Source: Phyllobates terribilis
Taxonomy: Eukaryota
Assembly (NCBI RefSeq): GCF_046119375.1
Contig: NW_027367250.1
Coordinates: 1 to 60,268, forward strand
Length of the DNA: 60,268 nt
Direction: 5' to 3'
Part shown: piece by piece, positions 14,100 to 46,848 of the stretch
Layout of the letters: each line of letters begins with the position of its first letter
Numbering within the stretch: the first letter of the stretch is position 1
Notes under the pieces: model-generated
What the model saw: the letters and a program-made list of their open reading frames with translations, nothing else
The model's database searches: none
Told to the model about the DNA's origin: nothing
Made by a program: the position numbers and the translations under genes

Positions 14100-14770
14100 T
14101 AAATTAGTTATATTAAATGTATTATTGTTTACAAATTATTCAGAAATTGTTTATAAATTGTTTATTTAGAAATTTTTTAGAAAAAATAGTATTAGATAGT
14201 TTATATAGAAATTATTTTTGATATAGGTTATTAGATAGTTTGTTTAGAAATTATTTAGAAAATAATAGTATTATTGTTTAGAAAATACATAGATTGTTAG
14301 ATAGGTTTTTTAGAATTATATAGAATTTTTTTCAGAATTATATATGATTTTTTAAGAATTATATAGATTTTTTAGGAATTTTTATAAATTATAAATGATT
14401 TTTAGGAATTTTTAGGAAATAGAATTGTAAAGAATTATATAGAATTTTTTAATAAATAGAATTATAAAGAATTATACATAGAATTTTTATTGATTTAGAA
14501 TTTTTATGCATTTAGGATTTAGAACTTAGAATTTTTTTTGGATTTTAGATTTAGAATTATATAGAATTATGTTGAATTTTTATGGCTTTAGAATTTTTGT
14601 GGATTTAGGGTTAATATATGATTTATGTGAATTTAGGATTATATATAATTGTGGATTTAGGATTATATATATATACTCATGGAATTTGAATAATATAGGA
14701 TTATTTAAATTGTTATTGGAGAGTCTTAAAATATTAAAATATTACCATATAAGAAATGAGAATTAGGATT
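14100..14770. repeat. AT-rich low-complexity minisatellite (TTAGAATTATATAG-like) in the presumed first intron of the CACTA gene
   Basis: AGAATT/AGAAATT/GATTT units are reiterated downstream of a TATA (~13697) and a CT-rich leader. Confidence 0.7.
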
Positions 14771-16520: not shown

Positions 16521-18389
16521 TAATGATTTGTATCTTTGTTATTGTTTGTACGAACTATGTTTGTTACGGTTAATTTTATAATATCAATTTCGGTTTAACT
16601 TATTAGTGTTTTTTATAATATTATGTTCCAATAAACTTTTAATTAATTAAAAATGTAAAACTATGAAAGTTAACGTTAACGACCACGTGAAGGTGTATTT
16701 GATAACGATAATCGATGACGTGACAAAGCTGTAGGGGTCAAATTAGGACGGGGTTTGCGACGGAAAGTCGGTCGCCACTATCGTTCTCCAAGGGGTCCAA
16801 ATTAGCGGCGGATTTCCGTCGTAAATTCCGTCACTAAAATCGGTTTCCCAAGGGTCCAAATTAGAAACGGATTTCGGTCACAACTTCCGTTGCCACAATC
16901 GGTCTCCGGGAGTCCAAATTTGGAACGGACATCTATCGCTAATTAGCGACATACCGTTTGGTCTGTCGCTAACTTCATTTGATACCAATTTGGGTGCGAT
17001 GGGTGACATCCATCGCTAAATCATTTTAGCGACGGATCTTTGTTGATTAGTGACGGAAATATCCGTCGCTAATCAACAGTATTCTAGTAGTGGACCCTTG
17101 TGTTCGATTTCAACTACTATACATATGTGGGTTTATTTGTAAGGGTTGGGTAGCTATTAAAGGAGGCTATCTCATGCACACAACCTCCGTTGTCTGTCAG
17201 GGTTGTGCGGTACCGGTCCGTGACACGTGCGTAGAGCGGTGGATCCCGTTTTGTGAATCATATTCCTTTTGGGACATTTTCAAAATGGAAATTATTTTAC
17301 TTTTCAATTCTTAACATATTTAAAACGGCTCTTTTAACTAGTCAAAAATAGGTTTCCTGATTTTCCTCCCGATTTGGCTGTTACACCCCACGGTTTCAGT
17401 AAGTGGAGTGTTGGCTATTTTTTCCTCCTATATAAATAGAGACCGCCATCAACGTTTTAGACACTGAACATTGATCTTTATTTTAATGAAACACATAAAC
17501 ACTCTGAGCATCCCAATTGATTCCAGTCCTTTGTTGGCGAGATCTCGCGATCGGAGGACGTTGTGCTAACATTAAGGGCGACGCCGATCTAACTCTGCTC
17601 TGAGACTCACGGCAAAATCATATCTAAGGAAGGGGCTACTGTACCACGATGCAACAATCGACTTCAATTGTTTTCTCAAAGGATTTTTTAATGAAAGAAT
17701 TTTAGAAACTAACCCCGTTCACTAGTTTTAATTACTCTCTAGACCCCATTTTATTAGTTACATTAATTAACCCTTGCTTAAATAGGTTTACTTTTATTTC
17801 TCTCTCCTCTCTCTCCTTTCACGTCTCTTTTCCTATCCCGTGTACGCCGCCTCTGTTCTTCTCCTCTCCTCTCCATTTTCGCGATCTCCATTTTCGACTC
17901 CTCTCCTCTCTCTCAACCTGCCGCCGGCGTCGACTCTCCATTGCCGGTCGGTCTCTCTCTCCATCGCCGGTCGATCTCTCTCTCCATTTTTCTCCATCGC
18001 TCTGGTGCTATCTCAATCGGTCTCCATCAAATCCGGTGCTATCTCCGGCGATTTGCTCCGTCTCCCGCCGACGTTACAGGTTAATCTTCCCTTTTCTTTC
18101 TCATAATACTTCGATTAGTGTATTTTTTGGTTTAAAGTCAGATTTTAAGATGCCACGTATTTTCAAGGGTTCTTAAATTTGTTCACTCTCCATTTTTGGC
18201 TCCTATCTCTTACTCTCCATTTAAGGTGTCACGTTGATTTCTAGGGTTTATATTCAGATTTAAGTTATTAATTGTATTTTCTAGGGTTCTTGAATTTTTT
18301 CACTTCGATTCAATACTTCGGCTATGCAGTTTGTTCGTTTTTAGCTTCCATTCAACACTTTGGTACCCGAAGTTGCCTCCGAATGCAAT

Positions 18390-21300
18390 TGGTGTGATGA
18401 CAATGCTGATACTTAAATTGACGTGTTGACGGTTTTAATATTAATATGATGACGGTGTTAAATTAGTGTGATGACAATTTAGTATCAATATGTGTTGACA
18501 CTTTTTAGTGTTATGTAGTGATGACAGTTTTAAATTAATGTGATGACGGTGTTAAATCAATGTGATGACAATTTAGTATCAATATGCGTTGACACTTTTT
18601 ATTGTTATGTAGTGATGACGATTTTAAACTAATGTGATGATGGTGTTAAATCATTGTGATGACAATTTAGTATCAATATGTATTGACACTTTTTAGTGTT
18701 ATGTAGTGATGACGGTTTTAAATTAATGTGATGATGATGTTAAATCAATGTGATGACAATTTAGTATCAGTATGTGTTGACACTTTTTAGTGTTATGTAG
18801 TGATGACGCTTTTATGTTATGACAATTTAGTAGTGATAAGTTGACACTTTTCAGTTTTGATGTTAGTTTATTCTATGTGATGACTCTTTTTATGTTGTGA
18901 CATTTTAAATCAATGTGAATACAATTTAGTATCAATGTGTGTTGGCACTTTTTTAGTGTTATGTAGTGATGTCGCTTTTATGTGACGACAATTTAGTAGC
19001 GATGTGTTGACATTTTTCAGCTTTGAGGTTAGTTTATTCTATGTGATGTCTCTTTTTATGTGGTGACATTTTATATTCATGTTTTGACAGTTTTATATGT
19101 TGTTGACATTTATTGATTATTTGATGACATGATGGTTTATTCTATTGAATTTGGTAATTTCTATGTGCTAGAGGAATTGCGTTATAACAGAAAGATCAAC
19201 ACCTATTATAGTGCTGGATTGATCAATACTTTGAAGAAGCATCTCCAGATAGATGTTTACGAAGAGGTAATACGTGGACCGTTTACTCCAATAATCAAGT
19301 TGACTAACAATTTATACTTCTCTGCTATCTTAGTTCATCATATGTTGATGCATAAGATCCACACTCCGAAGAAAAATGAGATGTGGTTTGAACTTGGTGG
19401 GAAGCTAGCTCGGTTTTTGTTAGTTGAGTATGCTGCAATTACAGGTTTAAATTATAAAGATTATCCTGAAATTGACATCCCTTCAACATACATTAAAGCT
19501 GAACTTGGTGGAAATAGTTGTGCATTTGCCAATCTACTTCGTCTATTTGTTGCTGAGACTGACTTGTCTAAGAAGAAGAGGTGGGCCCATGTACTACTTG
19601 TAGAAGGTTTTTTGCTATGCAAGAGAAAAACAGTTCTCATTGATCCATTGGTATATTTTCTTTCGAGTGATAGTAAAGTATTTGCTGAATATCCATGGGG
19701 AAGAATGTCATACACTTGGCTAGTGAATTCTCTTAGGCAGTTGAATAGAAATGGTCATCATAAACCAACTAATGGTACTCGTTATGGATACAATATATAT
19801 GCTTGTGTATTTGCTTCTCAGGTAATTTTAATTTTCAGAATTTATTGTTGTTTAATGATCTAGTTGTTTATTTGTATCTGATGACACTTTTATTTTTTAT
19901 TTTGCAAGGTTTGGATTATTAAAACATTCCTAAATTTTGCTAATGTTTGGGGTGTAAAAGCCAATCTCGAAAAGCGTGTCCTATTCTGTGCACGTTGGTC
20001 AAGCTCAGGGACTTCTAAACTGACCACCAAGATTAAATTGAGGTTGTTGCCAAACAACCAAGATTTGTAAGTTCTTTTTTTATGTGATGACAAATTAATT
20101 CTCTTAACTCTACCGTTATGTGATGACAAATTAGCGCTCTTAACTCTTTCTTAATTTTATGACACTTTTCTTATAACTTTATGAATTGTAAGTTCTTTTT
20201 TATCTGATGACTGCATTGTACCTTTTATCCAATTAATTGTGACATGGTGAATCTGAAATCTGAAGATAAGGTTGATGATCTAGCCTTCGATACTTATGTA
20301 CATTTGAGGAGAAATGGGAGTGCTACGACAAGGATTTCAGATATTGCTGCTGATAATAATCCTGAAGATACCGAGATGGATGATTTCACTGTTGCTACAA
20401 AGCCCCCAGTACAAACACTATTGAGAAAGAGGAAGATTGTTGATAACCCAGATGAGATAGAGGAAGATTCCAAGATGAAGAGTTTGAATTTGATAGTTGC
20501 CAAGGATCCCAAGGTTGCCGATGAAGTTGTTGTAGTCCATCAACTGCCTCGTAAGTTTATATTAATTGACGTGATGACAGTTTAGCTTTAAGTAATACAC
20601 CATAGACTGATGTGATGACAATTTAGCTTTAAGTGATGACACTATAGAGTATATATTGGTGTGATAATAGTTTTTGAGAATATGTGATGACAGTTTTAAC
20701 TATATGTGATATGTTATGACATTTTTTTTTATTAGATGACACTTTAGAGTTATGTGATGACAGTGTTTTCTATGTGTGAAATCTATGTGATGACACTTCT
20801 ATATGCTCTTTCGATGTGATGACACTTCTATATGTGATGATACTTTTTGTATTGATGTGATGACAGTTTAGCCTTAAGTGATGACACTATAGATTGATGT
20901 GATGAAAGTTTAGCTTTAAGCGATGACCCTATAGAGTATAGATTGGTGTGATGATAGTTTTTGAGAATATGTGATGACAGTTTTAACTATATGTGATATG
21001 TGATGACATTTTTTTATTAGATGACACTTTAGTGTTATGTGATGACAATTTTTTTTATGTGTGAATTCTTTGTGATGACACTTCTATATTTCATGACACC
21101 TTTTCTATTTTATGTAATGACAGTTTAGCTTTACGTGATATGTGATGACAATTTTTTTACATGACACTTTAGATTTATGTGATGACAGTTTTTATTGATG
21201 TGTGAATTCTATATGATAACACTTCTATATGTGATGACATTTTATTTATTTATATGAGAACAGTTTAGATTTATGTGATGCCAGTCTTAGATTGATGTGA

Positions 21301-24300
21301 TGACAGTTTTAATAATATATGTGATTTAACTATATGTGTTTTCATGACATTCTGGATTGATGTAATAACATTTTCATTTATGTGACATCTGTACCTGCTA
21401 AGATCATCGATTCAAGCTGAAGTTACTAAGAAAAGAGAGACCAACGAAGGAGATACAAACAACAGTGCTACCAAGTTCTGAGAGGCCAGTGAACACCACT
21501 TCCCAGATTTTGGGGAAGGTAAAAGCCCCCAATAAAGTTGTAGATGCTATCCCTTTGACTACATTTGAATCTAGTAAAAAGATTATCACTCCACCGGAGG
21601 AGTCGACTCCAAGATGGGCCAAGTTTATAGTTGAAAAATTTGAAGCTCAACAGAAATTCTTGAAGAACTTGCAATCCAAAGTGAATGATAACTCAATGCT
21701 ACTTGAACAACTTTCCAAGGATGTGAAGTCTGTTTTAGCTCACTTGAGAGGTTGGGACAAATCCAGTGATGACGGAAATGATTACTGTGAACAGATCTTT
21801 CATCAATGCAATGGCGATCAAGTAGCAAAACCACTCCAAGAGCCAAAGGCTGCTAAAGTGAAACTGGCATCAGAATAAGTTGAGGGAATACAACCAGTTA
21901 CTGAAATGAAAGAAGCCAAGCAAGGAAAGGATGTTGTCCATGAAGCTGTAATCCCCGAGCAAGACCAAGGGTTAACTACTGGACATTCAAATCCTCTCTC
22001 AGGTACCAACTATTTTGATGATATTGATCCTCGCGACCCAAATTATATTGAACTTGTGCGTGCCAAAGTAGATCATGATCAATATGATGTTGTAGAAGGT
22101 ATAATGGGTGATTGTTCTCAAATGACTAAACATGGGCAACTTTTTCATTGTTTTCTCCATGATCATCTTGTTGCTACAAAAAAAAAACATCGATCATGCC
22201 CATTTTGCCGAAGAGAAAGAGAAGTTGAGGTTTGTCGAAGAGAAAGGAAAGGAAGTTTTTGCTATTACAAAGTTAAGGAGGTCGTCAAGAGAAAACAAGT
22301 CTAGTCAATTTCTTTATGGTAGTCCATGGCTCAAAGAACCGAAAAAGAGGAGGCTCCCGAATAAATCTCGTTACTCCTTCTATGGTAATGAAGACCGTAA
22401 GGAATTCTATCAATGGTACAATGAGACGCAAGTGACATTTAACTCCTTTTCTATTTCACTATCCTGTAACAATTTTTCTATTTTTAATTCATTATGTTTT
22501 TGTTTAGTGATGAGAGTGCCACGATTATTGGAGGTGAAACACGTCATAGCAAGGATTTCTTCGATATTGTTTTGCCACTTAAATCTTGGCTAGCAAAGAA
22601 GTAAGTATTCTTTTGGCACTTTTGAATACATAACTGTAATGACATTTTCGTATGTGATGACACTTTTTTCATATGGGATGACACTTTTTCATATGTGATG
22701 AGACTTTTCGTATGTGATGACACTCTTAGTGTGTGATGACACTTTTAGTCGTGTTGACAGATTTTAGTATGTGATGACAGTTTTTATTTATGATGACAGA
22801 TTAATGAATGTGATTACAGTTTTAACATGTGATGAAACTTTTAGGCGTGATGACAGTTTTTAGTATGTGATGACAGGTTAATGAATGTGATGACAGTTTT
22901 AACATGTGATGACACTTTTAGGCATGATGACAGTTTTTAGTATGTGATGACACTTTTTATTTGTGGTGACAGATTAATGAATGTGATGACAGTTTTAACA
23001 TGTGACATGACAATTTTCATATGTGATGACATTTTTATAGTTGTGATTTAGGTTTTTAACAATACAGTGACACTTTTGTACGTGATGACACTTTTTAGCA
23101 TGTGATGAAATTTGTAACATTGTCATTGTTTATTGTGACGAACTTTTTATTACTATGGTGGCACTATTTTGTTATTTGATGACAGTATATACAAGAAGCT
23201 TTGTTCTACATGCGTAAGAGAATCAATAACAAGCCAGACAAGTTCAAGAACGTTGTCTTTGTAGATTGGATGCGGTACAAGTATTTTAATGAAAAGATGG
23301 TACAAAAGTACCTGAATGGCGAGGAATGCATACCAGATACCTTCAATGACTATTTTGCTGGAACACGTCCTGAGTTTTTTGGGAAGTCCTGGTATCAGGC
23401 TGTGACAACTGTTTACGCACCATTCTTATTGGAAAAGCACACTCCACACTTTGTTGGCTTAGAGTTTGACTTGGCTCGCTATAGAATAAGAGTTATGGAT
23501 TTTTTGTATTGGTTGACACCTGTGACAAACTTGTACAAATACTGAAACCCATTTGTAATTTTCTTCCATTTCTCATGAAGAAGGCGAGCAGATTTGATCA
23601 TCTCAGGAGTTTTGATGAAGAATTTCCCTTCTACAGAGATGTTAGTCTACCACAAGACGTTAAAGGGTAAATTTACATTTTCTACATGTTTTAACTTTCA
23701 CATAATATAATCTTACTAACTTATATTACTTTTATATTTTTTTCAGTGGCAATTGTGGCATTTTTACAATCAAGTAAATTGAACACACTGTATTCGATAG
23801 AAGTATGAAGGATTTAGACAAAGATCATAAAAAAACACGCAGAGAAAAGTTTGCCATTGATGTGTTCAAGCGAAATTGGGTGTGTGACCTTTTACCCACA
23901 AAGTAGATCTAGTTAATGTTATGTGATGACACTTTTATGGCTCTAATTGTAGAGAATGTTTCTAGACTATTTTGATGTTTCTTTGATGACACTAATTGCA
24001 GGTCTTCACCGACAACCTTGGAGAACCGAGTAAACGTAGTGACAAGGATGTGATGTTATCGGAGCAAATATTTTGTGAAGAAGGTGTTAGAATGCTTGAT
24101 GATATAGAGAAGAAAGAGCTCCCTAAGAAGAAGTCAATGAAGAATTGTAATTCTGGTGTTACTGATCGTATACCTAAGTTTAGTTTAGGAATATCTGGAA
24201 TTTAGTTGATGACAGTTTAGTTGTGATGACAGCTTATGTGATGATAGTTTTTGTTGTGATGACAGCTTATGTAAAGACAATTTCCTTTTGTTATGACAGT

Positions 24301-25210
24301 TTAGTTGATGACAGTTTTGTCGATGACAGTTTTGTTTGATGACAGATTCATTTTTCGCATGTTATGACACTTTTTTCGTATGTGATGACACTTTGTGTGT
24401 GATGACACTTTTAGTCGTGATGATAGTTTTTAGTATGTGATGATACTTTTTTGTATATGCTGAAACTTTTTAGTATGTGATGACACTTTATTGGATATGC
24501 TGAAACTTTTTAGTTTTGTATGTGATGACACTTTTCGTATGTGATGACAGTTTAGTGTGTGACAAACACTTCTAGTTGTGATTTTCTATGTGATGACAGT
24601 TTTTAGTTGTAATGACACCTTTGTATATGCTTACACTTTTTTTGTATGTGATGACACTTTTTATTACGTGATGACACTTTTAGTTGTGATTTCAGTTTTT
24701 AATAATGTGATGACACTTTAGTCGTGATGACACCTTTTTGTATATGCTGAAACTTTTTAGTATGTGATGACACTTTTTTGTATATGCTGAAACTTTTTAG
24801 TTGTGATGATAGATTAACGTATGTGATAACACTTTTTCGTATGTGATGACAGTTTAGTGTGTGATAAACACTTCTAGTTGTGATTTCGTTTTTTATTAAT
24901 GAGATGACAGTTTTTAGTGTGTGATGACACTTTTTAGTCATTACACTTTGAATATTGTGATGAAACTTCTAGTTGTCGTTTCGGTTTTTAATAATGTGAT
25001 GACACTTCTTGTTGTGATAATAGATATAGTTATAATTAGTTGATTGATGACATCCGACACACACTCAGAGTATTTCTAGTTAAAAATAAAACAATCTGTA
25101 GTAGCATCTTTGTGATGACAATCTGTAGTAACATCTTGCTATATTTGATAACACTTAAAAACATATATGATGACAACTAAACGTATTAATATTATCTTTC
25201 ATCTCGTGAC
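18390..25210 (+). repeat. GTGATGACA motif arrays on the plus strand, in introns and the 3' region of the DUF1985-Ulp1 gene
   Basis: Dense blocks at ~18390-19120, 20080-20245, 20570-21390, 22640-23185 and 23920-25210. They include 4 x 94-bp units (18447, 18541, 18635, 18729) and a 286-bp duplication (20571/20857). Confidence 0.95.
19129..23910 (+). pseudogene. DUF1985 (VANC-like) plus Ulp1/C48 SUMO-protease multi-exon pseudogene
   Basis: Exon 19129-19821 has FSAILVHHMLM..EMWFELGG..RF.L.EYAAITGL and FAEYPWGR.SY..L.NSL, continuing as Q|VW at 19909. The Ulp1 part has KSW...VYAPF..HF (His 23447), VMD, LPQ and GNCGIFTIK (Cys 23754). Stops include TAA 23775, and frameshifts are present. Confidence 0.85.
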
Positions 25211-28101
25211 AAACCCACTTTGTTGAAAAATTACTCTAATCCACTTGCATCGTAGCATTCTTACTGCTTGATGGTCTGAACTTGCATGATGTCTTGTTGT
25301 ATCCCATATTTGAACATTCCCCACACTTGATGGGCTTCCGTTTCTTCTTGATAAAACTTCTTCTAATTTCTATTTCACAAAGAAATCTTCGCTTCTTTGG
25401 CCTCCCGGTTTGTCTCATCACGAATTATGGATAACAAGCTATGCTCGCAATATCTTTGGGGACAACCGACTGCGACCTCATAAGCACCGGAAATATAGTT
25501 TCCTGGTATGACTTTGCCCAACTAGAATAGAGACAATACCTACTTACAAAATCCATAATATTACCCTTAACTTTTTGTAAGACAGTAATTGCATGTGCAC
25601 ACGGTATGTGATCCAAATCAAATACTTTGCAGCTGCAAGTCTTTCGTGATAGATCTACTATACCGGTAAACTTTCATCCAATAACCTCACTTTTCACCTT
25701 ATTCAACATCTTTACTTCGTATATCGATGACTCTTTATACCTTTCCTCCACCACTTTATGTACATGAGGAGGCAATTTATTTGTGCTCTTTTCAATAAGC
25801 TTTCTGCGTTTTGTAAAACCACCTCGATAGCAAATCTCGTATATACTCTAACAGAGCCACAAGTTGATATGACCGAGCTTCTTTCAATACTGAGTTTATA
25901 CTTTTTGAGTTGTTTGTTGTCATAATGTTGTATCTTTCACCTGCATTCGCAATCATTAGTAAGCATTAAAGTTATCTGTCAGGCGATTTTTAACAATATC
26001 TAAGTTGCCATAGTGTTATAGTGTCATCCATAATATTTTACAAAGTGTCATCACTATAAATAAAGTGATGACACTATCTAAGTTGATGATACTTTCTATA
26101 TATTGCCTTCAAATTTGATGACATTATCTATGTTGATGACACCTTATTTATTGTATAAGGTGTCATCGATATAAGTAAAACTGTCACCAGCCTTATTTAC
26201 ATAATTTGACGACACTATATAAGGGGTTATCATTATGGAATAGACGAAGATCATCACCTGGACAATATGAACAAGCCCAGTTCTCTAGCTTTGCTCGTAT
26301 AAGGTAATCCGTCATATTTGTATTCATTTCAGAAATTTTGTCAAAGTAGTGCTGAAACTCTATCTTGGTATAGCTTTCAGATGCTTGTGTGAACAAGTGG
26401 TGTATACCTTTGTTCTTGAACAGAGTTTTCAAATTCTCTTTAAGATGTCTTGTGCAAACCACATGTATGGAAGAACTGTAAATCTTCTCAAGGCTGGTTG
26501 CAATGCTCTTATGTCTATCCGACACAAACACTAAATTTGTCATACTTGGGATGACAGTATGGAGTTGCTCAAAAAACCATGTCCACGAGTTATCGTTTTC
26601 TAAATCAACGATAGACAACGCTAGAGGTTATATTTGATTATTGACATCTTGTGTTGTAGATATCATTAGATTTCCTTTATACTTCCCATGAAGATGTGTG
26701 TCATCCACCATGATGACCTTACACAAAAAAGTGTCAATAAAAAGTGTTCTCAAATATTAACTACAAATAGTGTCATCCATATTTAAAAAGTGTCATCAAT
26801 CAAAAGTGTCATCAACTACCAAACATGAAAAGTGTCATCAACTATGAAGCCTAAATCATAACTGTTAGTTGAGCATTAATAGACTTATTAAAGTTAATCT
26901 ATTTCTCTTTGTTTTGATAATAACAAACTAATATGTTTAATCTTTTAGTGTTTTTAAGCTTTCCAGGTTATTGTAATATCTACTAGCATTGACTTAGGTC
27001 ACTTAGAGATGCACTTCGACTAATCTCAGTCGCGCTTAACACCAAGCGGAGAAAGCAAGTTTCGCAAGCGGTGTTTAACAATCCCATTCAAGTCCAGAAG
27101 TGAGTATAAGCGAGCTTCTAAGGCATAGAAGATGCGCTTGAATGAAGCGGAAGTAGTGTTGATCATGAGGTTCCACCATAGCTTAGGGTGAACAATGGCG
27201 CAGAAGAAAACTACCAGAACGCAAGTGAAGGCTGGTGAGCGGGAGAATGCAAGTTGTGTGCCCAAGAGGTGCGAGAAGAATTTGTTATTCTTTGGGACGC
27301 AACTCCATGGATCGCCAACGTGGAGGGAGTTGGTTAGCACAAGTGCCCACGGATTGCTGAGGTGGCTTGCATCAACAAATGGAAGAACAAAACCAAATCA
27401 TACAAGCCGTTGATTAATTCTGGTGAAATGATCAAGGAGCACGGATTGATGAGGTGGCATTATGCTTAGTCTTTGTTTGTTACACGAAATTAAGTTAGAG
27501 TTGTAGCTTAAGGTTTGGTATAAATAGTGGACTGTTGCATTCACTCTAAGTATTACAAAGTGAGGAATTCAGAGAGAAGCTAGGAGAGCTTAAGTGTTTA
27601 CTCAGTTATAATCAAGAGAGTTGAAGTGTCATTGTTATAGAGAGCTGAACTCAAGTATTGTAAAGAGAGAGTTTACGAGTGAGCTTCAAAGTGTTGAAGC
27701 GAGAGATTGTAACCTACTTCTAATCAATACATTATAGCGGTAAGTTTTATCCCGAGGTCAATTAGTGACTTAGGGTTCTCACGTTTGGAAAAACTCTTTG
27801 TGTGCAAATCTAGTGTGCTTTAAACAACTTAAAGCGCGCTCTTATTGTTGTCTGACCTTTTCCGCGTTCAAGGACTTTAGTAAACCAATACTAAGTGTCT
27901 TACACTGGTCAAGCGCATCTCCAAGTATTAAAGCGCAATTCGATACTTGAGAAGCGCATCTAAGACTTAATGAAACTTAGAAGACATTGAACAATAGTGG
28001 CTTAAGAAAACACGAACTTACAATTGGTATCAGAGATACAGGTTTGCCTATTTTTGCACTAATCCTTTTTGCAGATCTCAAGGATTTTTAAGAGTAAGAA
28101 C

Positions 28102-30445
28102 ATGTCGAACTTCAACCTCGGAATCTCTCTCGCGAAGCCCCATGTGCTAATTGAAGGTGAATTGGAGTGGTGGATAACGATGACAAGAAATTACATCAAA
28201 CAAAGGGATTATCAGTGCTGGAAAATCATCGACAAGGGCGATGAGATAATTTCTGAGAAAGATGACTCCAAATGGAAGCCAAGGAGTACCAACTAATGGA
28301 GAAGAATGCTAAAGCGCGTCAGCTCATCCTAAATGCGCTTTCACGAAAAGACATTGATAGGGTAATGTCCCTTCCTACTGCTAAAGAGATGTGGACAGTC
28401 ATCATCAACATGCACTCAGGTAGTGAAGACCATGAAGGACAACAGGTTATTTGAGCTGAACCATGAATTTTTCTCCATTTAAAATGGAGAAAATGAGCTT
28501 GTATCTGACTATCATTCTCGATGTCAAATTCTTTATGACAAAATGCTATCCCCTGGAATGGAAAAGAAGGCTTGGGAGTACTCTATGGCATTCATCCATG
28601 GGGTGAACTCCAAGTACAAAACTCTCAAGCAGATTCTTCTCCAATCAAAAGCGACTCGAGAATTGCCTATTTCTGTGCTTGCAGGAAAGTTCAAGGTACA
28701 AGAAATCAAGAACAATGAAGAGAAAATCTCAGAACGTGAAACCAAGGCATGGCGCTCAAGCTCTCACGCGTCCTCTAGAACTAGAGAATGATGACGAAGG
28801 AGACGATGATGATGATAGAGATGTCGCCATGATGACCAAGGTTCTGAAGAAATTCTTTAAGAGACAAGGTGGATTCAAGCAGCGCACCCTACCACCAAGC
28901 AGCGTGATGTCCTAGACTTTACATGCTTTAAGTGCAACAAGAAAGGACATTTAGCCAAAGCGTGTCCTCATCCAAAGGTGAATCCCAAGCTCTAGCTTCG
29001 ACAAGCAGCCTCCTAAACAAGCATTTGTTACACTTTGGGGAGAATCAGATGGAGACTCTGATGATGGATCGCAAGACAATGTCTTCTTGATGGCTAGACT
29101 CTGGCTCTAAGATTGAGGTAACTGATCTTAACTATGAAATCTTACCCAAGCACAATCTTATAAATCTTTTAAAAGAACTGTTGGTTGATCATAAGTCACT
29201 AGCTGATGAAGCTAGGGACTTCTGGATGAGCTTAATGTTCTAAGGAAGAAGTAGTTGAGCTTTCCAAGCGCTTACATGACAACCCCACTCTCCTGACTAA
29301 ATCTTGTGAGCGTTGTCATTGAAACGAGTTGGAAAGAAACTCTGACTAAACTAAGGATGTAAAGCTCGATCAGATCATATCAAAGCTTGACATTCTTACT
29401 AAGCTAGTAGAAGCAAAGTCTGTCCCTCAAACAACCTTTGTGAAAGCTAGACCTGGATTGGGCTATGCCCCCAGGAGTCTTCCTCTAACTCCAGTCCCCC
29501 TCAATCAAGTGATCTCTCTACTAAATACAAATCACTTGAGCAAGACTTGAATGCTTACAAGGGTGAGAACTCTCAGTTGAAAAGCATGATCAAAGTTCTT
29601 GAGGAACAACCATCCGAAACCAAAGAATGGTTTCATGGGGAGAAAGCGCATCATTTATATGTGAAACAAGCGCGAACCCAACTCAGCCTCCTGTCTTACA
29701 GAAGAAAGAACCATTCAGACCAGGAAAAGGCAAGTATGGTTACGTAAGAGGTAACCCTTACTGTACCTTTTGTGGTCACAATGGACATAACAAACGTGAG
29801 TGCAAGGACCTAAAAGTCCTTAAGAATCAATTCTATAAGCCAATGGCTAAATCTGAGGGCAAGCGCATACGTCGTCGACATTCATCTGTCGAGAACGATT
29901 GCGCTTCAGCACAAGCAGGTACACTTCGTAAAGCGCGACCTCATATGGTGCTTGATCTGAATGATCCAAGTTATTACGAGCCAGTCCAAAAGACTAGCAC
30001 ATAATAGCTATGAGTAACGTTCCCACGAAGCGCAAGCATCTGTGGGAAATCAAAGCATGATCTTTGTATTTTCAGGTTGGAATGAAGAGTAGAGAATGCA
30101 CTGAAAGAGGTCGTTTGTGTCATGACGAACGATCCACAATTGCTACTCTCATTTCAAGCTAAGGAGGGAGATAATGTCTTCCTCAGTGACGAAAGAACAA
30201 GTAAAGATCAATGCTAGAGGACACAAGCGCAACCTATGATATTTTCAGCGCATTATAAGTATCCAGTACATCACTCACACTAAGCACATCGATGTACAAC
30301 ACCACTTTCTACGTGATCATGTGGAGCGCAAGAACATCGAGCTTACTCACGTATCTTCAGAAGGGCAATTAGCGGATATTTTACTAAAACGCTTAATCGA
30401 TAGGTCTTCTTAAACCTTCGGGTTCAGCTTGGCCTTATGCGACTC
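28102..30445 (+). pseudogene. SIRE gag (UBN2-like, two Zn knuckles), protease remnant and RNase H C-terminus; integrase and RT deleted
   Basis: NAKARQLILNAL..TAKEMW; CFKCNKKGHLAKAC (~28925); CTFCGHNGHNKREC (~29760); MTNDPQLL..KEGDNVF (~30120); HTKHIDVQHHFLRDHVE..QLADI (~30275-30385). Confidence 0.85.
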
Positions 30446-32105
30446 CATTAGCTTTGAGGCTATGGCACTGTAAGTATTCCACTTCATTGACTAGAACTAG
30501 CATGCTCAATATCAAGGTACGAACTATGGTAGCTTGTGCTTGATAGCTTTGAGTCATTCTTGCTCTATGGTTGTTCATTAAGATGAATAGTATTGAAGTT
30601 GTCTTACTTTCTTAGCTTGATCTGTTATAATCATAGCCATTACATGCTCTTCTTTGCCAAAACTTGACAATGGTGATCGTCTTCTACCCATATTACATGC
30701 ATAAGAAATGATCCATTGCATAGGTATCCTTAGCCTGACTAGATGTTACGCTTCTCTTACCCTTACTTGAACTCCACATATGAGAAGTATTCATTTGGTG
30801 ACATAAAGCCCAATTACCATTTTACATGTATATGCACATACGACCACATCAACTTGAGTGTTGAATGCTCTAATGTCCCCAATATGAAATGTGCATCTTC
30901 CTATTCATTACTTGCATTACATTGTGGTTGGTAAGTCAAACTTGACATCACATGGCTACACCTAACGCTTCAAGTCAGTTTTGTGCTACATCAGGGGTTT
31001 AATGAGTGGTAATTTGTTGAGCTTCACAGCGCTTCAAAGCGCACTTCAGCGTGTTGTGTTCAAATTTTCGGTTTTGCTTAAGTGTGAAGCAACGGCTACA
31101 TTCAACGGATCTGTCCAACGGCTATTTTTTTGCTTTCTGCGTTCAACGGCTAGTTTTCTGACCGTTGGAGCCTAGCACGTCTAATCAGCGATATTAGTGG
31201 ACCGTTGTTCCTTTTTCTGCCGTTATTTGTGATTGGCTTGTTTGAACGGTGAAGAGTGGAGGCCAAGTGCATAAATACCAGGTTTGTGTTGTTTCTTCCG
31301 CTTACCTTGTTATCTACCTCTTGTCTCTCTCTCTTTCTTAAACTCCTCTCAAGTTTCCTGACCATCACTACTTCACAATAAAAGGGAGAACGTGAACCTC
31401 GCCGACCTTGACCCGCCACCCGTGCCCAGGTCGAGTTGATCATAAAATATAAATCTTCCACATCCACTCCATCCGACCCAAACCCAGCTCCTCAAAATGA
31501 TCCAAATCCAAACACATACATCTGCCCCAAATCCCCTATTATAGACCTAACTACCACAAAAGACCTAAGCCCCACTAAAACACTCTTGCCCAAGAAGCTC
31601 CTCTCTACTCACATGATCCACAGGTGGATTTCTCACTCACAGCCGATGACTTAGATCTGGCTGGATATGATGTAGAGAAAGAGATCGCTCGAATCACAGG
31701 GGCTTTCCACTCAGGCTATTCCTTTTTCTACCCCGGCCAAGGGTAAAGTTATTCTGGAGATAGAGACACCGCCCAGACCTGGTGCTTCAACTCATCCAGG
31801 TACTCAGTCTCTCATGTCGCCTAAGGATTTGATAGTAGGTATTCCCTCCGACTCTGATGAAGATGGCGATTACCGTATTCAAACACGTTTCAGAGACAGA
31901 TTCCCCTCTCCCTCTAGTGACTCAACGCGCTGATAGACATAGTGATGCGCTTTGTCGTCAAAAGAAGAAGCGCAAGGCTCCTCTCGCTCCTCCTCCAGAA
32001 GAAGTAGAATCTTCAGATGGTTCTGAGCCGACTCACCACCTCAAGAGGTTGTCCCTGAACGTGCAGTTTCTACTCGCTCTAGAGGCGCCAAGGTAATAGG
32101 TGTAA

Positions 32106-32852
32106 ATGAATTCCCTCCAGTCCCCACAGGTATTGCCAAGCCGCTCATTCCTATTTCCAGAAATCGTCATCTCTGATCTATTCTCCGAGCTACAAGAGTC
32201 TTCGCACATCTCGCGCTTCTCCACATGGCTAAGTTTTCAAGGTTGGGATAAGCTAGAGACTGAGCCGGCACGGTGTAACGATGCAATGGTGTACCAGCTT
32301 TACGCCACCATGGAGTATCAACCTGCAAATCCCGAGTATAGTCAAGTATGGTTTTACTGGAGAGGGAATTTGAAGGAAACCTTCTTGGTGAAGGATTTGG
32401 CGAAGGCGATAGGGCTTACTGGCCAGTCCAATGGATTTGGACGTCTTTACAAGAAGAACTGGCCAGCCGGTGCTAAACGACTCAAAGAAGCGGTATTTGG
32501 ACCCAATGTGTCAAAGGGAACCCTTACAGTGGATATGCTAAAGCCGTGCCGCCGTCTCCTTCATCACTTCATCATCACGAACATCACCCAAAGGGACTAC
32601 GACAGAGAGAAAGTTACAATAGGTGACTGCTGCATCATGGCCGCTGTGATCTCCAATCAGGTAGTTAATACCGTTCAGCTCATGATGAGCCATCTTTTCC
32701 TTTGTCGTGCTTCTACTTCAGGACCCCTCCCTTTTCCTCATCTAATCTGTAAGATGCTCAAGGCCGACGGTCTGTACGATAGTGCCCTCACCGACTATGC
32801 GTGCTCTACTTTTTCTTACATCAGCTGCTATTTGCGCTATCCTTCTCCCTAA
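32106..32852 (+). pseudogene. SIRE extra (env-like) ORF with a plant-transposon-protein-type domain
   Basis: Lies between RNase H and the PPT. Motifs QGWDKL..VYQLYATM..LLHHFIITNI..KVT..LPFPHLICKML. Broken upstream (~31430 onward) and downstream. Confidence 0.7.
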
Positions 32853-35800
32853 AACTGAGCTCCTCATCCTTCAAGATCTCGCTCCGAGTTAAGTCCTCGC
32901 ACTCGCCCTCCTTCTGCTTCCTCAGATCGGGTGTAGTTGTAGCCCTTGAAGCGCCATTCATGATCGCGGTGAGAAGAGCATGTCTGATCTTTGTGAGACT
33001 GTTGAGAAGTTTATGACGTTGGTGCAGTCTTCTTTTGACCGTGTCTTCCAGCTGATGATCGAAGCAAATGAAAAGCGTTAGGTTGTGGTGGTGTTGGTTG
33101 TTTCTTGTTTCTCTTATTCTCTCCTTGTTTTTGCTTGTTCTGAATTCCTATCCCTAGGTATCCTATCCTATTTTGTGACAGCTACTTATGAATGATAATG
33201 TAGTATGTTCTGGTTTTATAACTTTGATAGCTTCGCTAACTTGCTCTTTGATACTTTGCCTTGATTTTTTGTTCACTATACTTTCTAGTTTGATTTCTTA
33301 GCTAGAAAGCGCAACCTCCTATCTTTCTTACTGTATGATTGAGCTTGAATTTTTTCGATGATGTCAAAAGGGGTAAGAAAACAGGTACATCCTTCTTTGA
33401 TTTATGGGGAAGTTTAAGATCATGCTTAAACTCAGGGGAATTTGAATAACTGTGTTGGTTAAGTACTTCGTAAGGTACTTCGATCTAATTCCAAATCTGA
33501 ATACTTGATTAACTTGTGTTTATTGTCTCCATTTTCATCATTAATGAAAGTATTCATGAGCTTACCTGTTCACTGTTTGTCATCATCAAAATGGGGGAAA
33601 TTGGTATTTGAGCTTTAATAGACTTATTAAAGCTTAATCTATTTCTCTTTGTTTGATGATAACAAACTAATATGTTTAAACTTTTAGTGTTTTTAAGCTT
33701 ACCAGGTTATTGTAATATCTACTGGCATGCACTTAAGTCACTTAGAGATGCGCTTCGACTGATCTTAGTCGCGCTTAACACCAAGCGGAGAAAGCAAGTT
33801 TCGCAAACGGTGTTTAACAATCCGTTCAAGTCCAGAAGTGAGTATAAGGGAGCTTATAAGGCATACAAGATGCGCTTGAATGAAGCGGAAGTAGTGTTGA
33901 TCACGAGGTTCCACCATAGCTTAGGGTTAACACTGGCGCAGAAGAAAACTACCAGAACGCAAGTGAAGGCTGGTGAGCGGGAAAATGCAAGTTGTGTGCA
34001 CAAGAGATGCGAGAAGAACTTGTTATTCTTTAGGACGCAACCAGGGATCGCCAACGTGGAGGGAGTTGGTTAGCGCAGTGCCCACGGATTGCTGAGGTGG
34101 CGTGGATCAACAAATGGAAGAAAAACCAAATCAATACAAGCCGTTGATTAATTATGGTGAAATGATCAAGGCGCACAGATTGATGAGGTGGCATTATGCT
34201 TAGTCTTTGTTTGTTACACAAAATTAAGTTAGAGTTGTAGCTTAAGGTTTGTGTATAAATAGTGGATTGTTGCATTCACTCTAAGTATTACAAAGTGAGG
34301 AATTCAGAGAGAAGCTAGGAGCGCGTAATTGTTTACTCAATTGTAATCAAGAGAGGTGAAGTGTCATTGTTCTAGAGAGCTGAACTCAAGTATTTGTAAA
34401 GAGAGAGTTACGAGTGAGCTTCAAAGTGTTGAAGCGAGAGATTGTAACCTTCTTCTAATCAATACATTGCAGTGGTGAGTTTTATCCCGAGTCAATTAGT
34501 GACTTAGGGTTCTCACCGTTGGAAAACTCTTTGTGTGCAAATCTAGTGCGCTTTAAACACTTAAAGAGCGCTCTTATTGTTGTCTGACCTTTTCCGCGTT
34601 CAAGGACTTTAGTAAAACAATTACTAAGTGTCTTACACTGGTCAAGCGCATCTCCAAGTATTAAAGCGCAATTCGATACTTGAGAAGCGCATCTAAGACT
34701 TAATGAACCTTAGAAGACATTGAACAATAGTGGCTTAAGAAACACGAACTTACAATAACTGTCATCAAACAATAGCGAAACTGTCATCAAAACCTAAATC
34801 TCAAAACTGTCATCAAACCTACATCAGAACTGTCATCAAACCATCAATAAACTGTCATTAAACCCTGAACCTCAAAAACCGTCATCAAACCTAAATCAAA
34901 ATATTCATCCAAACAAAAGTGTCCTCAACTTTGAACTATCAATACACTGTCATCAAACCATCAATGTCATCAAACCTAAATCGAAAGTGTCATCAATCTA
35001 TCAAAGCTAAATCAAAACTGTCAGAATTTTCATCAATTTGTTAAAAATGTCATCATACTATCAAAACTGTCCTCGTATTGTCAAAACTATCATCAATTTG
35101 TCAATATTATTATTAGACCTAGATTAGTTTTCGAACAAAATAAAACGAACTGGATTAGTGATGACATCAAACTTGTTGACAATATATACGATAATCATAG
35201 AAGTTTTGATGCGAGATTTTGCATACCATACCTGTCTCAAGTAATTGAAACCTCTAACACAAGTTCTTATTGAAACAAACGCATACTTGAAATGGTCTTC
35301 ATATTTAGTTTCAAACTTTTGTATATGTACCGGGGTTTACTTGTTCCCAAAATGTATAAATACGATGGTAGAAGTCTATAATTCAACTCAGATGTCCCTC
35401 TAATCATGTTTTGTTCCCATTCTTTAGCTCTCCAAGCCTTCCAATAACTAATATTTTGGGAGTAGCCATTCCTCATATCATTTTGTATTGACTTTGGATT
35501 TGGTCCATTTTTAACACCCGATGCATACCTGTACACAAAAGAATGATGAAAATCAATTAAAGTAATAATAATACATTATAGTTTCATCAACTGTGATGAC
35601 ATATTCTTTTATTATCATCACAATAAATAACCAGTATCATCAATGAATTTGATGACTCTAAAATTTGTTTAATCATACCTTGTTTGTATTTGTTCTCCAA
35701 TAGCTCTATAAGTAGGATGACAATGGTTTGCACATCGGGTGTCAAGTGAGCATGTATGAACGTCATTATATATTCTAATTTGAAAGAATTCCGTGTCTTT

Positions 35801-37969
35801 CACCTTTTCATCCCGAAAATTCCAAATGTAACTTTGATCAACACATTTTACCCTATACAAATACTTTGTTGATTTACTCACTCTATACCCAAAGTTTTTC
35901 TCTTAGGGCCATATGTTTTCTCTTAGGGCCATATTTTGCAATTGCAGTCTTAACTTCATCTTTGCTATTGAACAATTTTCTACATGTAAAAAGTCTATTG
36001 CACTTGACTGACATGTTGATTATACCTTTCAGAAGCGTCATCATGGTCATCATCAGTACTATCATCATGTTGCGTAATAGTGTCATCATGTTGCGAATAG
36101 TGTCGTCATGTTGCGGAATAGTGTCATCATGTTGCGGAATAGTGTCATCATGATGCAGAATAGGGTCGTTATGATGTGGAATAGAGTCATCATATTGCAC
36201 TTTAGCCCTGTCATCATTTCTCATGCTACTAATATTTACATCAATTGTCTTCCTTTTCTGGGGTTGAATGACTTCCATAGAATTCTCTAATGACACATAT
36301 AATGGTAATGACCACGATACTTCAGGGCTGTCATTTATAGCTATAAAAGACTTGAGATCATCGTTATCCTCAATTGTATATGGAGTTCTCAATATATGAT
36401 GAGGATGGAGGTGACCGAATATAAGATTAGAATCTTTGAAATCGATCTTGAATCTGTTAATAATTTGCATCTTTAGATCTTCTAGTTCAAAACCGTCATC
36501 AAGTACAAATGCTTTTGTTTTCATGTTTCCATGATAAGAACCATTATCTTCATCTACAATATTAAGTAAAACAAAAAATAAGCATCATCAATAAAAAAGT
36601 GTCATCGACTATTAACCGTTTTCAAAAGTGTCATCAATGAAAAGGTTTCATCAATTACTTACATTAAGTAAATCAATATTTCAAAAGTGTCATCTATAAT
36701 TAAAAAGTGTCATCAAACCTAAATCAAAACTAAATCTACCAACAACTCTAAACTGTCATCAAACAATCTACCAACCATGAAGGTGTCATCAGGTATAAAT
36801 AAAATGTGTCCTCAACTTTCCAACAATGAAAAGTGTCATCAAATATGAAACCTGAATCAAAACTGTCATCAAACCATCAATAAACTATCATCAAACCCTA
36901 GATATCAAAATTGTCATCAAACCATCAGACATAAATCCAAAACGTCATCAAACCAAAAAATGTGCACAACTTTGAACCATCAATAAGCTGTCATGAAACC
37001 ATCAATAATTTAGAAATTGTCATCAAACCTAAATCGAAAGTGTCATTATATTGTCCTCATAGTGTCATCAATCCATCAAAGCTAAATCAAAGTTGTCCTC
37101 ATATTGTCGAAATTGTCATCATACTATCGAAACTGTCCTCAAATTATAAAATTTGTCATAAAGTTGTCAATATTGTCATCAAACCTAGATCATTGAAATC
37201 GAATGCGATTTTACCATAGAATCGAACGAAATATCAGTTTTAGAACAAAAATCAATTGAAATAGAACATTTTACTGAAATAAGGAGAGGAATGAGACCGA
37301 AAATCAGTTTTCGCGGCTGAGATGTGGCCGCGATGCGTCTGAGAAGGAGGAAACCGGATAGACGATGACAAAAGGAGGAAGAAGACGAAAAGGACAATAG
37401 ACGGCTGGAAAACAATCACCGGTGTAGAACGATAGACGACGAAGGAATCGCCGGATAGAAGACGACGAAAAGGACGCGGCTGGTGCAGAACGATAGACGA
37501 CAAAGGAGGACACCGGTGTAGGCAAAGGAGGACGCCGGCAAGGCGACTCCGGTCAGGTGAGTTCGCGTGAGAGAGAGGAAGAAGAGAGTTCGCGTGAGAG
37601 AGAGGAAGAAGAGCGTTCGGGCGTAGAAGAGAGTACGCTGAGAAAGAAGAGAGAGAAATATTTTTTAGGTTTAGATTTTGTTTATATATTGGGGTTAGTT
37701 TTGTTAACTTAAAAAGTGGGGTCTGTTTATCTAATTTCAACTAAGGTTTGGACTAGTTAGCGAATCGACCTTTTTAATTGCCATCTGCATCTGGTTCTGA
37801 CTTCCTACTAAGAGAAAATATCCAACATAATACTCACACATGTATCCTAGGTTGAGTGATTAAATCCCGGGGTGTTGCAAATGTCACTCTAGCTGGATAA
37901 AAACTTGTGGTCTTTATGTGCTTTTTTTTCTTCTTCTTTTTGTACAAGCAAACAAAAGGCCTATCAAAA

Positions 37970-45100: not shown

Positions 45101-46848
45101 AACGATAAATTATATGACTTTAAGTCGTGTAAACAAAATTGATCGAGTAATGTAATTAGGTCGGACTGACTTTGTTGTATGTCAGGTCCAAATGAACATT
45201 TAGATTATGTCTTGTACCCTGGTCATACTGACTTGGTGGAATGTCAGATCTAATTATATTGTTGACATGGCCGAGACGTTAGACTTAGTCATGTTGTCGG
45301 ACCTAGTCATGTTGTCCGACTGGTGGCGTCGTCAGACATAGTCGTATCGATGGACTGATCAAGTCATCTTTCTGGTGGCACCGTCTGATATATTCGTATC
45401 GACGGACCGATCAAGTCCTCAGATTGATGGCTTCATTAGACATAGTCGTATCGACGGACTGATCAAGTCGTCAGACTAATGGCGTCGTTAGACATGGTCG
45501 TGATGGTTTAGTCGTGTACCAGATCCGAATGAACATTCAAATACGTCATCCCCAGGTGATACTGACTTGGTCGAGCGTCGGATTTGATTGTACCGTCAAA
45601 CATGGTCAGGATCTCAGACTCGGTCATGTCGTCCGTCGTGGTCCCTTCACCAAATTAGTTATGTAGTTGAACTAGTCAATGTCGTCAGACTAGGATGTGC
45701 CATCAGACATGGTCATGATTTCAGATTTGGTCAAGTTGTCAGACTTGTTACATCATCAGACCCGTCCGCGTTGTCAGACTGGGTGTGCCATCAGAAATGG
45801 TCGTGATGTCGGATTTGGTCATGTCGTCAGGCTTGTTACGTCATCAGATCCGTCCGCGTTGTCAGACTGGGTGTGCCATCAGACATGGTTGTGATAACGG
45901 ATCTGGTCATGTCGTCAGGCTACTTGCGTCATCAGACCTGTTTCTGTCGTCAGACATGTTCCAGTCGTCAGACATGTTTCTGTCGTCAGACGTGGTCGGA
46001 TCGTCCGACTGGTTACGTCGTTAGGTTTAGAAGTTTTGTTAGATCTGGTCATGAAGTCGGACCTGGATGAGGCTGTGGATTGTATCTACGACTTCAACAA
46101 TAATGCATACTAGATTAGATATGATGATTGTAAAGCGATCTAGATGAATAGATTAATCGAATGATTTTAACCATCTGCCCCACGGTGGGCGCCAAAGTGT
46201 TTTGGACAAATTTAGACCAATAGATATTAATTCGTTAAATAGTAGGGTTAAGATAATTAATACATATCGATCAATCATACATCAAGATAATCAGATTAAA
46301 AATGATAATAATGACTAGATTATTGAATTACAGCGTCGGAGCTAGATTGAAAGATACAAGTAATGTATGAAAAGAGTACATGGAAAAGATTAATTGAACT
46401 TATCTTTATCGAACGAGCTGACAGAATTACAGGACGGACTGGCCGAATTACAGGACTGAAACGAGTATATGGAGGATTACAAGATGGAAACAAGTATATG
46501 GAGGGAATCAGATTTCGTAGTTTGGTGTTGGCGTACATATGAATTGTAGATCTGCATGGAGTAGGTTAGAAGGCCGGAGTAGGAGTTTATCCGAATTGGA
46601 TCTACTATCACAAGGGCAGAACAACTCCCTTTTATAGCTGACATCTACCTAGCAGCGTCTTGCTTCTCAAGTCATGGACGGTTACAACCGCTTCTAGATT
46701 TTAAGGAGACGATGGAGAATAAATCTTCAGCAGGTTCAAGCTACAATAATAGGGATTCCCTAACGATTTGGACCTTTACAAAGTGGTTCGTACATACGGG
46801 GGATCGACGGTCGTGTCGTTTACTAGCTGCAAAATCTCGACCCCAACA
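39101..46848 (-). mobile_element. Older Tat-lineage LTR element with a degenerate interior
   Basis: Direct repeats 39101-39742 and 46198-46848, TSD CTACT/CTAAT (1 mismatch). The reverse-complement PBS GCCCCACGGTGGGCGCCA (46177-46194) is a perfect tRNA-Lys type, and GGGGCAAT serves as PPT on minus at ~39743-39750. No long ORF remains. Confidence 0.85.
45150..46070 (-). repeat. GTCGTCAGAC-rich tandem arrays next to the PBS of Tat element 2
   Basis: ~52-bp units (45328, 45381, 45432, 45483), 3 x 88-bp units (45697, 45785, 45873), and short ~19-bp units at 45940-45995. Confidence 0.8.

Follow-up and report, generated by a model that had tools for sequence, protein, structure and literature searches.

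A candidate VANC/Kaonashi-type effector and target relic in a decayed Mutator-like element

Does a broken transposon that carries both a DUF1985 gene and long arrays of a short motif preserve the two halves of an anti-silencing system? The question is raised by a Mutator-like element (MULE) found in a stretch of 60,268 nt from Phyllobates terribilis (assembly GCF_046119375.1, contig NW_027367250.1, positions 1-60,268), which is called the window below. The best-understood examples of a transposon opposing the DNA methylation of its host through a protein that recognises specific sequences are VANC-type systems, for which a use in epigenome editing has also been proposed. VANC21 and VANC6 combine a DUF1985 with a DUF287 domain; the former binds YAGTATTAY and the latter AGTTGTCC/AGTTGTAC (PMC5735166; PMC10398659), and arrays of the target motifs occupy non-coding parts of the cognate elements (PMC5735166). 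In some VANDAL elements, the VANC gene carries a transduplicated Ulp1 domain, an arrangement known as Kaonashi or KIU (PMC13317346, citing Hoen 2006 and Sasaki 2022). Such elements are reported to read motifs of their own and to lower methylation at their own kin (PMC13317346, citing Sasaki 2022), and the capture of Ulp1 has been dated around the monocot-eudicot split (PMC13317346). A preliminary description of the window had spoken of an Ulp1-like VANB, which we abandon, because the work cited here attaches Ulp1 to the VANC gene itself, as Kaonashi/KIU (PMC13317346).

We favour, with moderate confidence, the reading that the locus is a relic of a VANC/Kaonashi (KIU)-type effector-target module, held in a dead MULE of the kind without terminal inverted repeats (non-TIR). 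The effector part would be an accessory gene with DUF1985, of the VANC21 fold, in its first large exon and an Ulp1-like protease domain fused downstream. The target part would be the approximately 100 copies of TGATGACA(C/G)TTT, mostly about 20 bp apart, that lie in nearly every non-coding interval of the element. From the precedent of VANC21 and VANC6, we infer that these arrays would be bound by the DUF1985 protein of an active sibling, that binding would remove DNA methylation locally, with the loss spreading over the element, and that transcription of both genes and movement of the element would follow.

The DUF1985 protein and its putative target motif

A hidden Markov model search with PF09331 matched the open reading frame (ORF) 19117-19860 at E 5e-18. 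When this ORF was compared with all PDB sequences, the only real match was VANC21 (9lnj/9lnk, E 3e-4), and a family profile made from the ORF and 39 relatives retrieved VANC21 and no other entry (E 5.6e-32, with 235 profile positions aligned). The family alignment was also the basis of an AlphaFold2 model, which had a mean predicted local distance difference test score (pLDDT) of 88 and a predicted template modelling score (pTM) of 0.85. Foldseek gave a single significant match in the PDB, the VANC21-DNA crystal structure 9lnj_A (E 1e-8, TM 0.75 by query), with an alignment of 238 columns at 18% identity; the next match was at E 0.75. As judged by sequence profile and modelled fold, the exon encodes a true homologue of VANC21, and the kinship with VANC proposed in the preliminary description is upheld by the Pfam, profile and structural matches together. 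The closest protein among 1.84 billion representatives was 49% identical, and 46 reached E 1e-10; a word-indexed protein search gave no match at E 1e-10. In a tblastn search of the window with 150 DUF1985 relatives, the DUF1985 exon only was matched.

Counting positions around every GATGACA gave the common unit of the arrays, TGATGACA(C/G)TTT. Units on the left side of the element have (T)ATG before the core; those on the right side, in opposite orientation, have T instead of G before it, and the right-arm variant, so oriented, is TTGATGACA. Expected numbers were obtained from dinucleotide-preserving shuffles of the window. The form GTGATGACA is present in 59 exact copies, against 0.75 expected and a largest shuffle count of 4; all of them fall within 18394-35601, and 58 of the 59 are on the + strand. 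Allowing one mismatch at most, 138 copies were found in the MULE, 3 in a retrotransposon nested in it and 15 in the other 40 kb or so, and it is because of these 138 that the earlier figure of well over a hundred motifs is fair.

The full core, TGATGACA(C/G)TTT, is still more restricted. The element holds 98 copies, 71 on the + strand (18.4-26.1 kb) and 27 on the - strand (26.0-26.9 and 34.8-37.2 kb), and outside the MULE's own DNA there is one copy in the nested retrotransposon and none in the remaining ~40 kb of the window. Non-coding DNA, 6.7 kb in all, contains 92 of the 98 copies, and 5.5 kb of exon-like DNA the other six, as expected from the earlier placement of the motifs in introns and untranslated stretches. 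Neighbouring motifs are most often 18-22 bp apart, and a second group of distances lies near 40 bp. It had been stated that comparable arrays are absent from neighbouring and nested elements. As to the neighbours, the motif is indeed missing there, but the neighbouring DNA has tandem arrays of its own; as to the nested DNA, which does carry one core copy only, the description had to be corrected to a long terminal repeat (LTR) retrotransposon at 26863-34754.

The element contains no VANC21 or VANC6 motif, and CATGAACC was not found in the 60-kb window. A literature search for the motif returned primers and unrelated uses only. The view that it is no described VANC target is consistent with its difference from the motifs of VANC21 and VANC6.

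The Ulp1-like domain, mudrA and the decay of the copy

Pfam scans took in all ORFs of at least 45 codons on the strand of the accessory gene, and none of these matched Peptidase_C48 (PF02902). Because the Pfam model finds none, a custom profile was needed, for which six DUF1985-Ulp1 relatives supplied their C48 domains. Among all 1964 six-frame fragments of the window, this profile picked ORF 23183-23542, at E 9e-7, and a read-through of the domain with X at the breaks covered profile positions 26-224 of 230 with a score of 48.5 bits. The ESM Atlas features of the same region likewise lead to PF02902 clusters. Catalytic positions could be aligned for His (TPHF), Asp (VMDF) and Cys (GNCG), which face HW, LD and DCG in the profile, and also for Gln (LPQ). 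A GT-AG intron lies at about 23666-23744 within the domain, which has two lesions: a frameshift in a T-run at about 23497-23502 and an in-frame TAA at 23775-23777, five codons past GNCG.

Taken at the sequence level, the Ulp1-like domain is real, divergent and broken. With its reading frame interrupted, no active Ulp1 enzyme is expected from the window copy, and the earlier statement that this copy is a pseudogene holds for the same frameshift and stop. The DUF1985-Ulp1 gene of the preliminary description survives in part: PF09331 and the custom profile place both domains on one strand, while Pfam's own Ulp1 model, with which the search had been proposed, is silent. Between the two domains, a TAA at 21876-21878 splits two ORFs of the same frame and the frame changes within 22126-22301; these may be lesions or introns. 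The middle ORF does not resemble its counterpart exon in L006, one of the related loci described below.

The accessory gene, with its DUF1985 exon and broken Ulp1-like domain, is on the + strand and converges with mudrA on the - strand. The identity of mudrA was confirmed by its MULE domain and SWIM finger, and tblastn with the transposase of a related annotated locus (L003) mapped 565 of 757 residues, at 35965-35175, 26720-26256 and 25944-25284. At the 5' end of mudrA, a motif-bearing tandem repeat of 21 bp x6.6 (36062-36198) is found inside an open frame of 233 codons.

End-to-end alignment of the two ends of the element revealed degenerate inverted termini that share CTAAC, AGACCCCAYTTT, TAACCC and a CT-rich leader, in line with the Mutator-like element with degenerate termini that had been described. 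By eye, we noted a candidate 9-bp target-site duplication, TTTTTTAAT (17684-17692) and CTTTTTAAT (37770-37778), in which 8 of 9 bases match. The element is a plant Mutator-like transposon, in a decayed copy. The leader at its left end probably forms exon 1 of the DUF1985 gene, which would be non-coding, to judge from the sequence and from L006, where a CT-rich leader is likewise followed by a GT donor and a motif-filled intron.

The LTR retrotransposon was inserted inside a motif array and splits the MULE. Its LTRs are about 1160 bp long, with 1099 matching positions (~94% identity). The only domain match in it is PF20167 (Transposase_32), at 32106-32849. Because no reverse transcriptase or integrase was found in its scanned ORFs, it is maybe non-autonomous. 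Its primer-binding site is of the tRNA-Met type. The features of the element are collected in Table 1.

Table 1. Positions of the features of the Mutator-like element in the window
Feature	Positions	Strand	Remarks
Whole Mutator-like element	17693-37769	.	12.2 kb of own DNA plus 7.9-kb nested LTR retrotransposon
CT-rich leader	17800-18090	+	Taken as non-coding exon 1 of the DUF1985 gene; GT donor at its end
Motif array A	18394-19100	+	Includes 94-bp x4.2 repeat; variants GTGATGACG, GTGATGACA, GTGTTGACA
DUF1985 exon	19117-19860	+	Open over 248 codons; PF09331 E 5e-18; VANC21-type DNA-binding fold
Motif arrays B and C, intron	20073-21309	+	Includes 286-bp x2 duplication; ORF 20211-20582 between them
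Middle ORFs of accessory gene	21402-22590	+	No recognisable domain; ORF reading
Motif array D	22635-23090	+	Periods 19, 39, 77, 96 bp; 14 core copies
Ulp1-like (Peptidase_C48-type) domain	23183-23860	+	Complete but broken; custom C48 profile E 9e-7
Motif array F, between convergent genes	23923-25120	+	Period ~20 bp, ~30 units
mudrA 3' exons	25284-26720	-	MULE domain 26196-26627 (PF10551, E 5e-8); SWIM finger 25428-25673 (PF04434, E 1.5e-10)
Small array in mudrA intron	26046-26142	+	3 + and 1 - copies; sole array off its gene's sense strand
Left half of mudrA-intron array	26709-26857	-	Cut by LTR insertion; motif copies on - strand
Nested LTR retrotransposon, outside the system	26863-34754	+	Target-site duplication ATAAC; primer-binding site TGGTATCAGAG
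Right half of mudrA-intron array	34760-35104	-	Split by LTR insertion; variant TTGATGACA
mudrA 5' exons	35175-36584	-	tblastn; holds 21-bp x6.6 repeat 36062-36198 with motif in ORF
Motif array I, mudrA 5' end	36600-37190	-	11 core copies, spacing ~20-22 bp
CT-rich leader, mirror of left-end leader	37559-37640	-	Tandem-repeat scan, sequence, end alignment

Related loci and competing explanations

If the protein and the motif form a pair, the motif found at other DUF1985 genes is informative. Phylogenetic placement, which had been suggested as a check, put the window protein in a clade of 10 with support 100/99, in a maximum-likelihood tree of 40 DUF1985 domains. Two other members of this clade have the core beside their genes. 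At L002, which encodes P0002 (34% identity to the window protein), the 754 nt that precede the DUF1985 exon hold nine copies of TGNTGACA, all of them sense, for a shuffle mean of 0.07 and a maximum of 1. At L006 and L007, two contigs 99.5% identical but from different samples, which encode P0003 (32% identity), 18 and 12 copies of TGATGACA were counted, all sense, for a shuffle mean of 0.2. In L006, they occupy the first intron, later introns and a downstream exon, where they are read in frame as GDDK codons (L006 2400-3140). Plant-type telomere-like repeats (CCCTAAA/TTTAGGG) are interleaved with TGNTGACA at L002 1-480, upstream of the DUF1985 exon.

L003, L004 and L005 belong to the other major DUF1985 clade. 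L003 has an array of TTTAGAAT/ATTCTAAA just upstream of its own mudrA (16532-16918), and L005 (15551-21814 on the chromosome-scale contig GCA_003260655.2) has 20 copies of the palindromic TCGATCGA, often spaced by 24 bp and adjoining two tandem DUF1985 genes; the window core is missing from both. TCGATCGA and the DUF1985 proteins of L005 are thereby a candidate for a different protein-motif pair. No motif array was seen at L004, and the contigs of L001 and L011 are too short to be judged for arrays. The pattern over these few loci is that related proteins go with a related motif, and distant proteins with other motifs or none. The motif had been called family-specific, and this is right insofar as the element alone carries the arrays within the window and distant loci differ, but the core is shared by two relatives at 32-34% identity.

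Rather than being read by the DUF1985 protein, the arrays could be binding sites of the MURA-like transposase, oversized subterminal repeats serving transposition or activation. As in subterminal repeats, the motif keeps one direction through the left 8.4 kb and the reverse direction through the right 3.5 kb. Because of the array at 26046-26142, the flip has to be placed between 26142 and 26709, inside mudrA and not at the gene junction, which also speaks for the transposase. The polarity may simply have been inherited from element halves that were set in inverted orientation. The AtMu1 transposase alone is reported to bring about sequence-specific activation and hypomethylation of cognate copies (preprint 10.64898/2026.08.24.746577), and the sharing of the core among relatives could equally follow the transposase. 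On the other hand, known subterminal repeats cover a few hundred bp, whereas the arrays extend 8 kb inward and fill introns: they span 18.4-26.1 and 26.7-37.2 kb, internal introns included, and are not confined to the terminal few hundred bp. Hypomethylation induced by Spm1 TnpA stays at the element termini (10.64898/2026.08.24.746577). The motif moreover pervades the DUF1985 gene in L006/L007, and the element encodes a homologue of a protein that has been crystallised on its target DNA. The transposase explains the inverted arrangement and not the reach into every intron, and we regard it as an unlikely reader of the arrays.

Could the arrays instead have no reader at all, being functionless minisatellites that grew from a slippage-prone, T-rich unit by tandem and segmental duplication in a silenced element? 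The nested duplications noted earlier are real and are what such growth would leave. Tandem Repeats Finder reported the 94-bp repeat (x4.2, 18423-18814, 92% matches) together with overlapping periods of 19-22, 39-41, 59, 77, 96 and 140 bp, and the 286-bp duplication (x2; 20597-20804 versus 20884-21089) is 93% identical. The copy is also dead, predates a nested element whose LTRs have diverged by ~6%, and has counterparts to its arrays in unrelated metagenome contigs. Against this stands the constancy of the core. At least nine arrays, separated by exons and differing in period (19-22, 39-41, 77, 94, 140 and 286 bp) and spacers, keep the same 8-12 nt, and the core turns up again, in other samples, beside the DUF1985 genes of two diverged relatives, which for an 8-mer is beyond chance or slippage alone. 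Minisatellite growth explains the duplications and not the conservation of the core across arrays and relatives, and is in our view an improbable account of the whole.

Strand polarity has a further aspect. In 8 of 9 arrays, the motif is on the sense strand of the host gene, as it is in 18 of 18 copies at L006; no strict sense-strand rule holds, however, since the array at 26046-26142 in the mudrA intron breaks it. The sense strand of the arrays is 41-43% T and 10% C. U-rich introns are needed in dicots, and the T-richness of the arrays possibly reflects this need. We also take GTGATGA to match the box C consensus. This polarity, and nothing else, suggests that the motif works through a host factor (a TGACA- or TGACG-binding transcription factor) or at the RNA level (U-rich intron, box-C-like GUGAUGA), which is very improbable, as one array is antisense to its gene, units of 20 nt are too short for small nucleolar RNAs (snoRNAs) and Rfam at gathering thresholds has no match in the whole window. 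A box C/D snoRNA cluster was rejected, and the snoRNA idea dropped, because of this Rfam result.

Several observations weigh against the VANC/Kaonashi-type module itself. DUF287 was found neither in the + strand ORFs of the accessory gene nor in 52 longer relatives. The DUF1985 and Ulp1 exons would be parts of a single gene and transcript, to judge from the relatives, 7 of the 52 longer ones having both DUF1985 and Peptidase_C48. Within the clade of ten, L009 and L010 show no array in flanks of 200-320 nt, and the signal of L008 is weak. The core is common to DUF1985 proteins that are just 32-34% identical to the window protein, which fits poorly with the fast co-evolution of protein and motif in VANDALs; a different conserved binder, transposase or host factor, would explain a shared core equally well. 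Finally, tandem arrays of TGATGACA exist on metagenome contigs that have no DUF1985 or MULE gene in the available DNA, and for this reason the motif alone is not diagnostic. They came from a scan for motif pairs 8-14 nt apart, which returned at least 120 contigs, with DUF1985 or MULE similarity in none among the matches listed. The scan is silent on family specificity, yet it establishes that TGATGACA arrays occur in other contexts. Regular arrays of 19-23-bp units with TGATGACA or TGATGTCATCA, without DUF1985/MULE similarity, were seen on the metagenome contigs L017, L121, L116, L023 and L103; the units of L116 (GTGATGACAAG) resemble the motif of the L006 family.

A bolder version of the module would turn the shared core to account: the TGATGACA arrays and this DUF1985 clade would be an old, slowly evolving pair, kept at ~33% protein identity, and the sense polarity would reflect an anti-silencing step coupled to transcription or RNA. 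We hold this to be unlikely. If true, it would contrast with the rapid turnover of motifs in Arabidopsis VANDALs, with the motif entering even coding exons (GDDK) of some relatives.

A single dead copy of a known kind is unsurprising in itself, and the novelty of the VANC/Kaonashi-type module proposed here is modest, because VANC genes fused to Ulp1 and paired with motifs of their own have been described before (PMC13317346). What the locus adds is a candidate pair, a DUF1985-Ulp1 protein and TGATGACA(C/G)TTT, with very clean arrays. The solved, DNA-bound homologue allows modelling of specificity, and one core across divergent relatives would give a handle on the residues that read DNA and on the pace at which such pairs change.

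Surrounding DNA and comparison with known systems

Directly right of the element, an ORF on the - strand at 37973-38362 matches RVT_3 (RNase H-like), and the MULE therefore probably adjoins or sits within a retroelement fragment. Upstream of the element, at 14124-14697, are AT-rich tandem arrays of TAGAAT/TTTAGAA units, possibly left by another MULE family. Further tandem arrays, built on GTCGTCAGAC and GTCATCAGAC with periods of 18, 36, 52 and 88 bp, occupy 45282-46009; no coding domain was identified near them, and they perhaps represent the subterminal repeats of a different DNA transposon.

Three known systems invite comparison. Subterminal repeats of CACTA (En/Spm) elements, bound by TnpA, also consist of a short motif in many copies that turns to the opposite orientation toward the two ends, and the TnpA system has been linked to element-encoded, sequence-specific hypomethylation (10.64898/2026.08.24.746577). 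The CACTA repeats are terminal and their TnpA is a helix-turn-helix protein, whereas the arrays described here are element-wide and their candidate binder has the DUF1985 fold.

VANC21 of VANDAL21 (Hiun) and VANC6 of VANDAL6, both from Arabidopsis (Fu 2013; Hosaka 2017, PMC5735166; Sasaki 2023, PMC10398659), offer a MULE with degenerate termini and a DUF1985 accessory protein of the same fold. As in VANDAL21 and VANDAL6, tandem copies of a short motif have built up between the genes and in the introns of the element, and the rest of the window lacks such arrays. The motifs differ, TGATGACA(C/G)TTT here versus YAGTATTAY and AGTTGTMC there, and the window gene has an Ulp1-like domain downstream in place of DUF287. 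Identity to VANC21 is 18% in the structural alignment, and the window copy is broken.

Kaonashi elements (KI-MULE/KIU; Hoen 2006; van Leeuwen 2007; Benjak 2008; reviewed in PMC13317346), which are non-TIR MULEs, have DUF1985 and an Ulp1-like domain on one strand beside mudrA, as in the window. Unlike in Kaonashi/KIU, the Ulp1 part here is beyond the reach of Pfam's model and carries a frameshift and a stop. The layout is that of annotated proteins with DUF1985 and Peptidase_C48, such as the one of L003, whose gene converges with mudrA in the same order as in the window.

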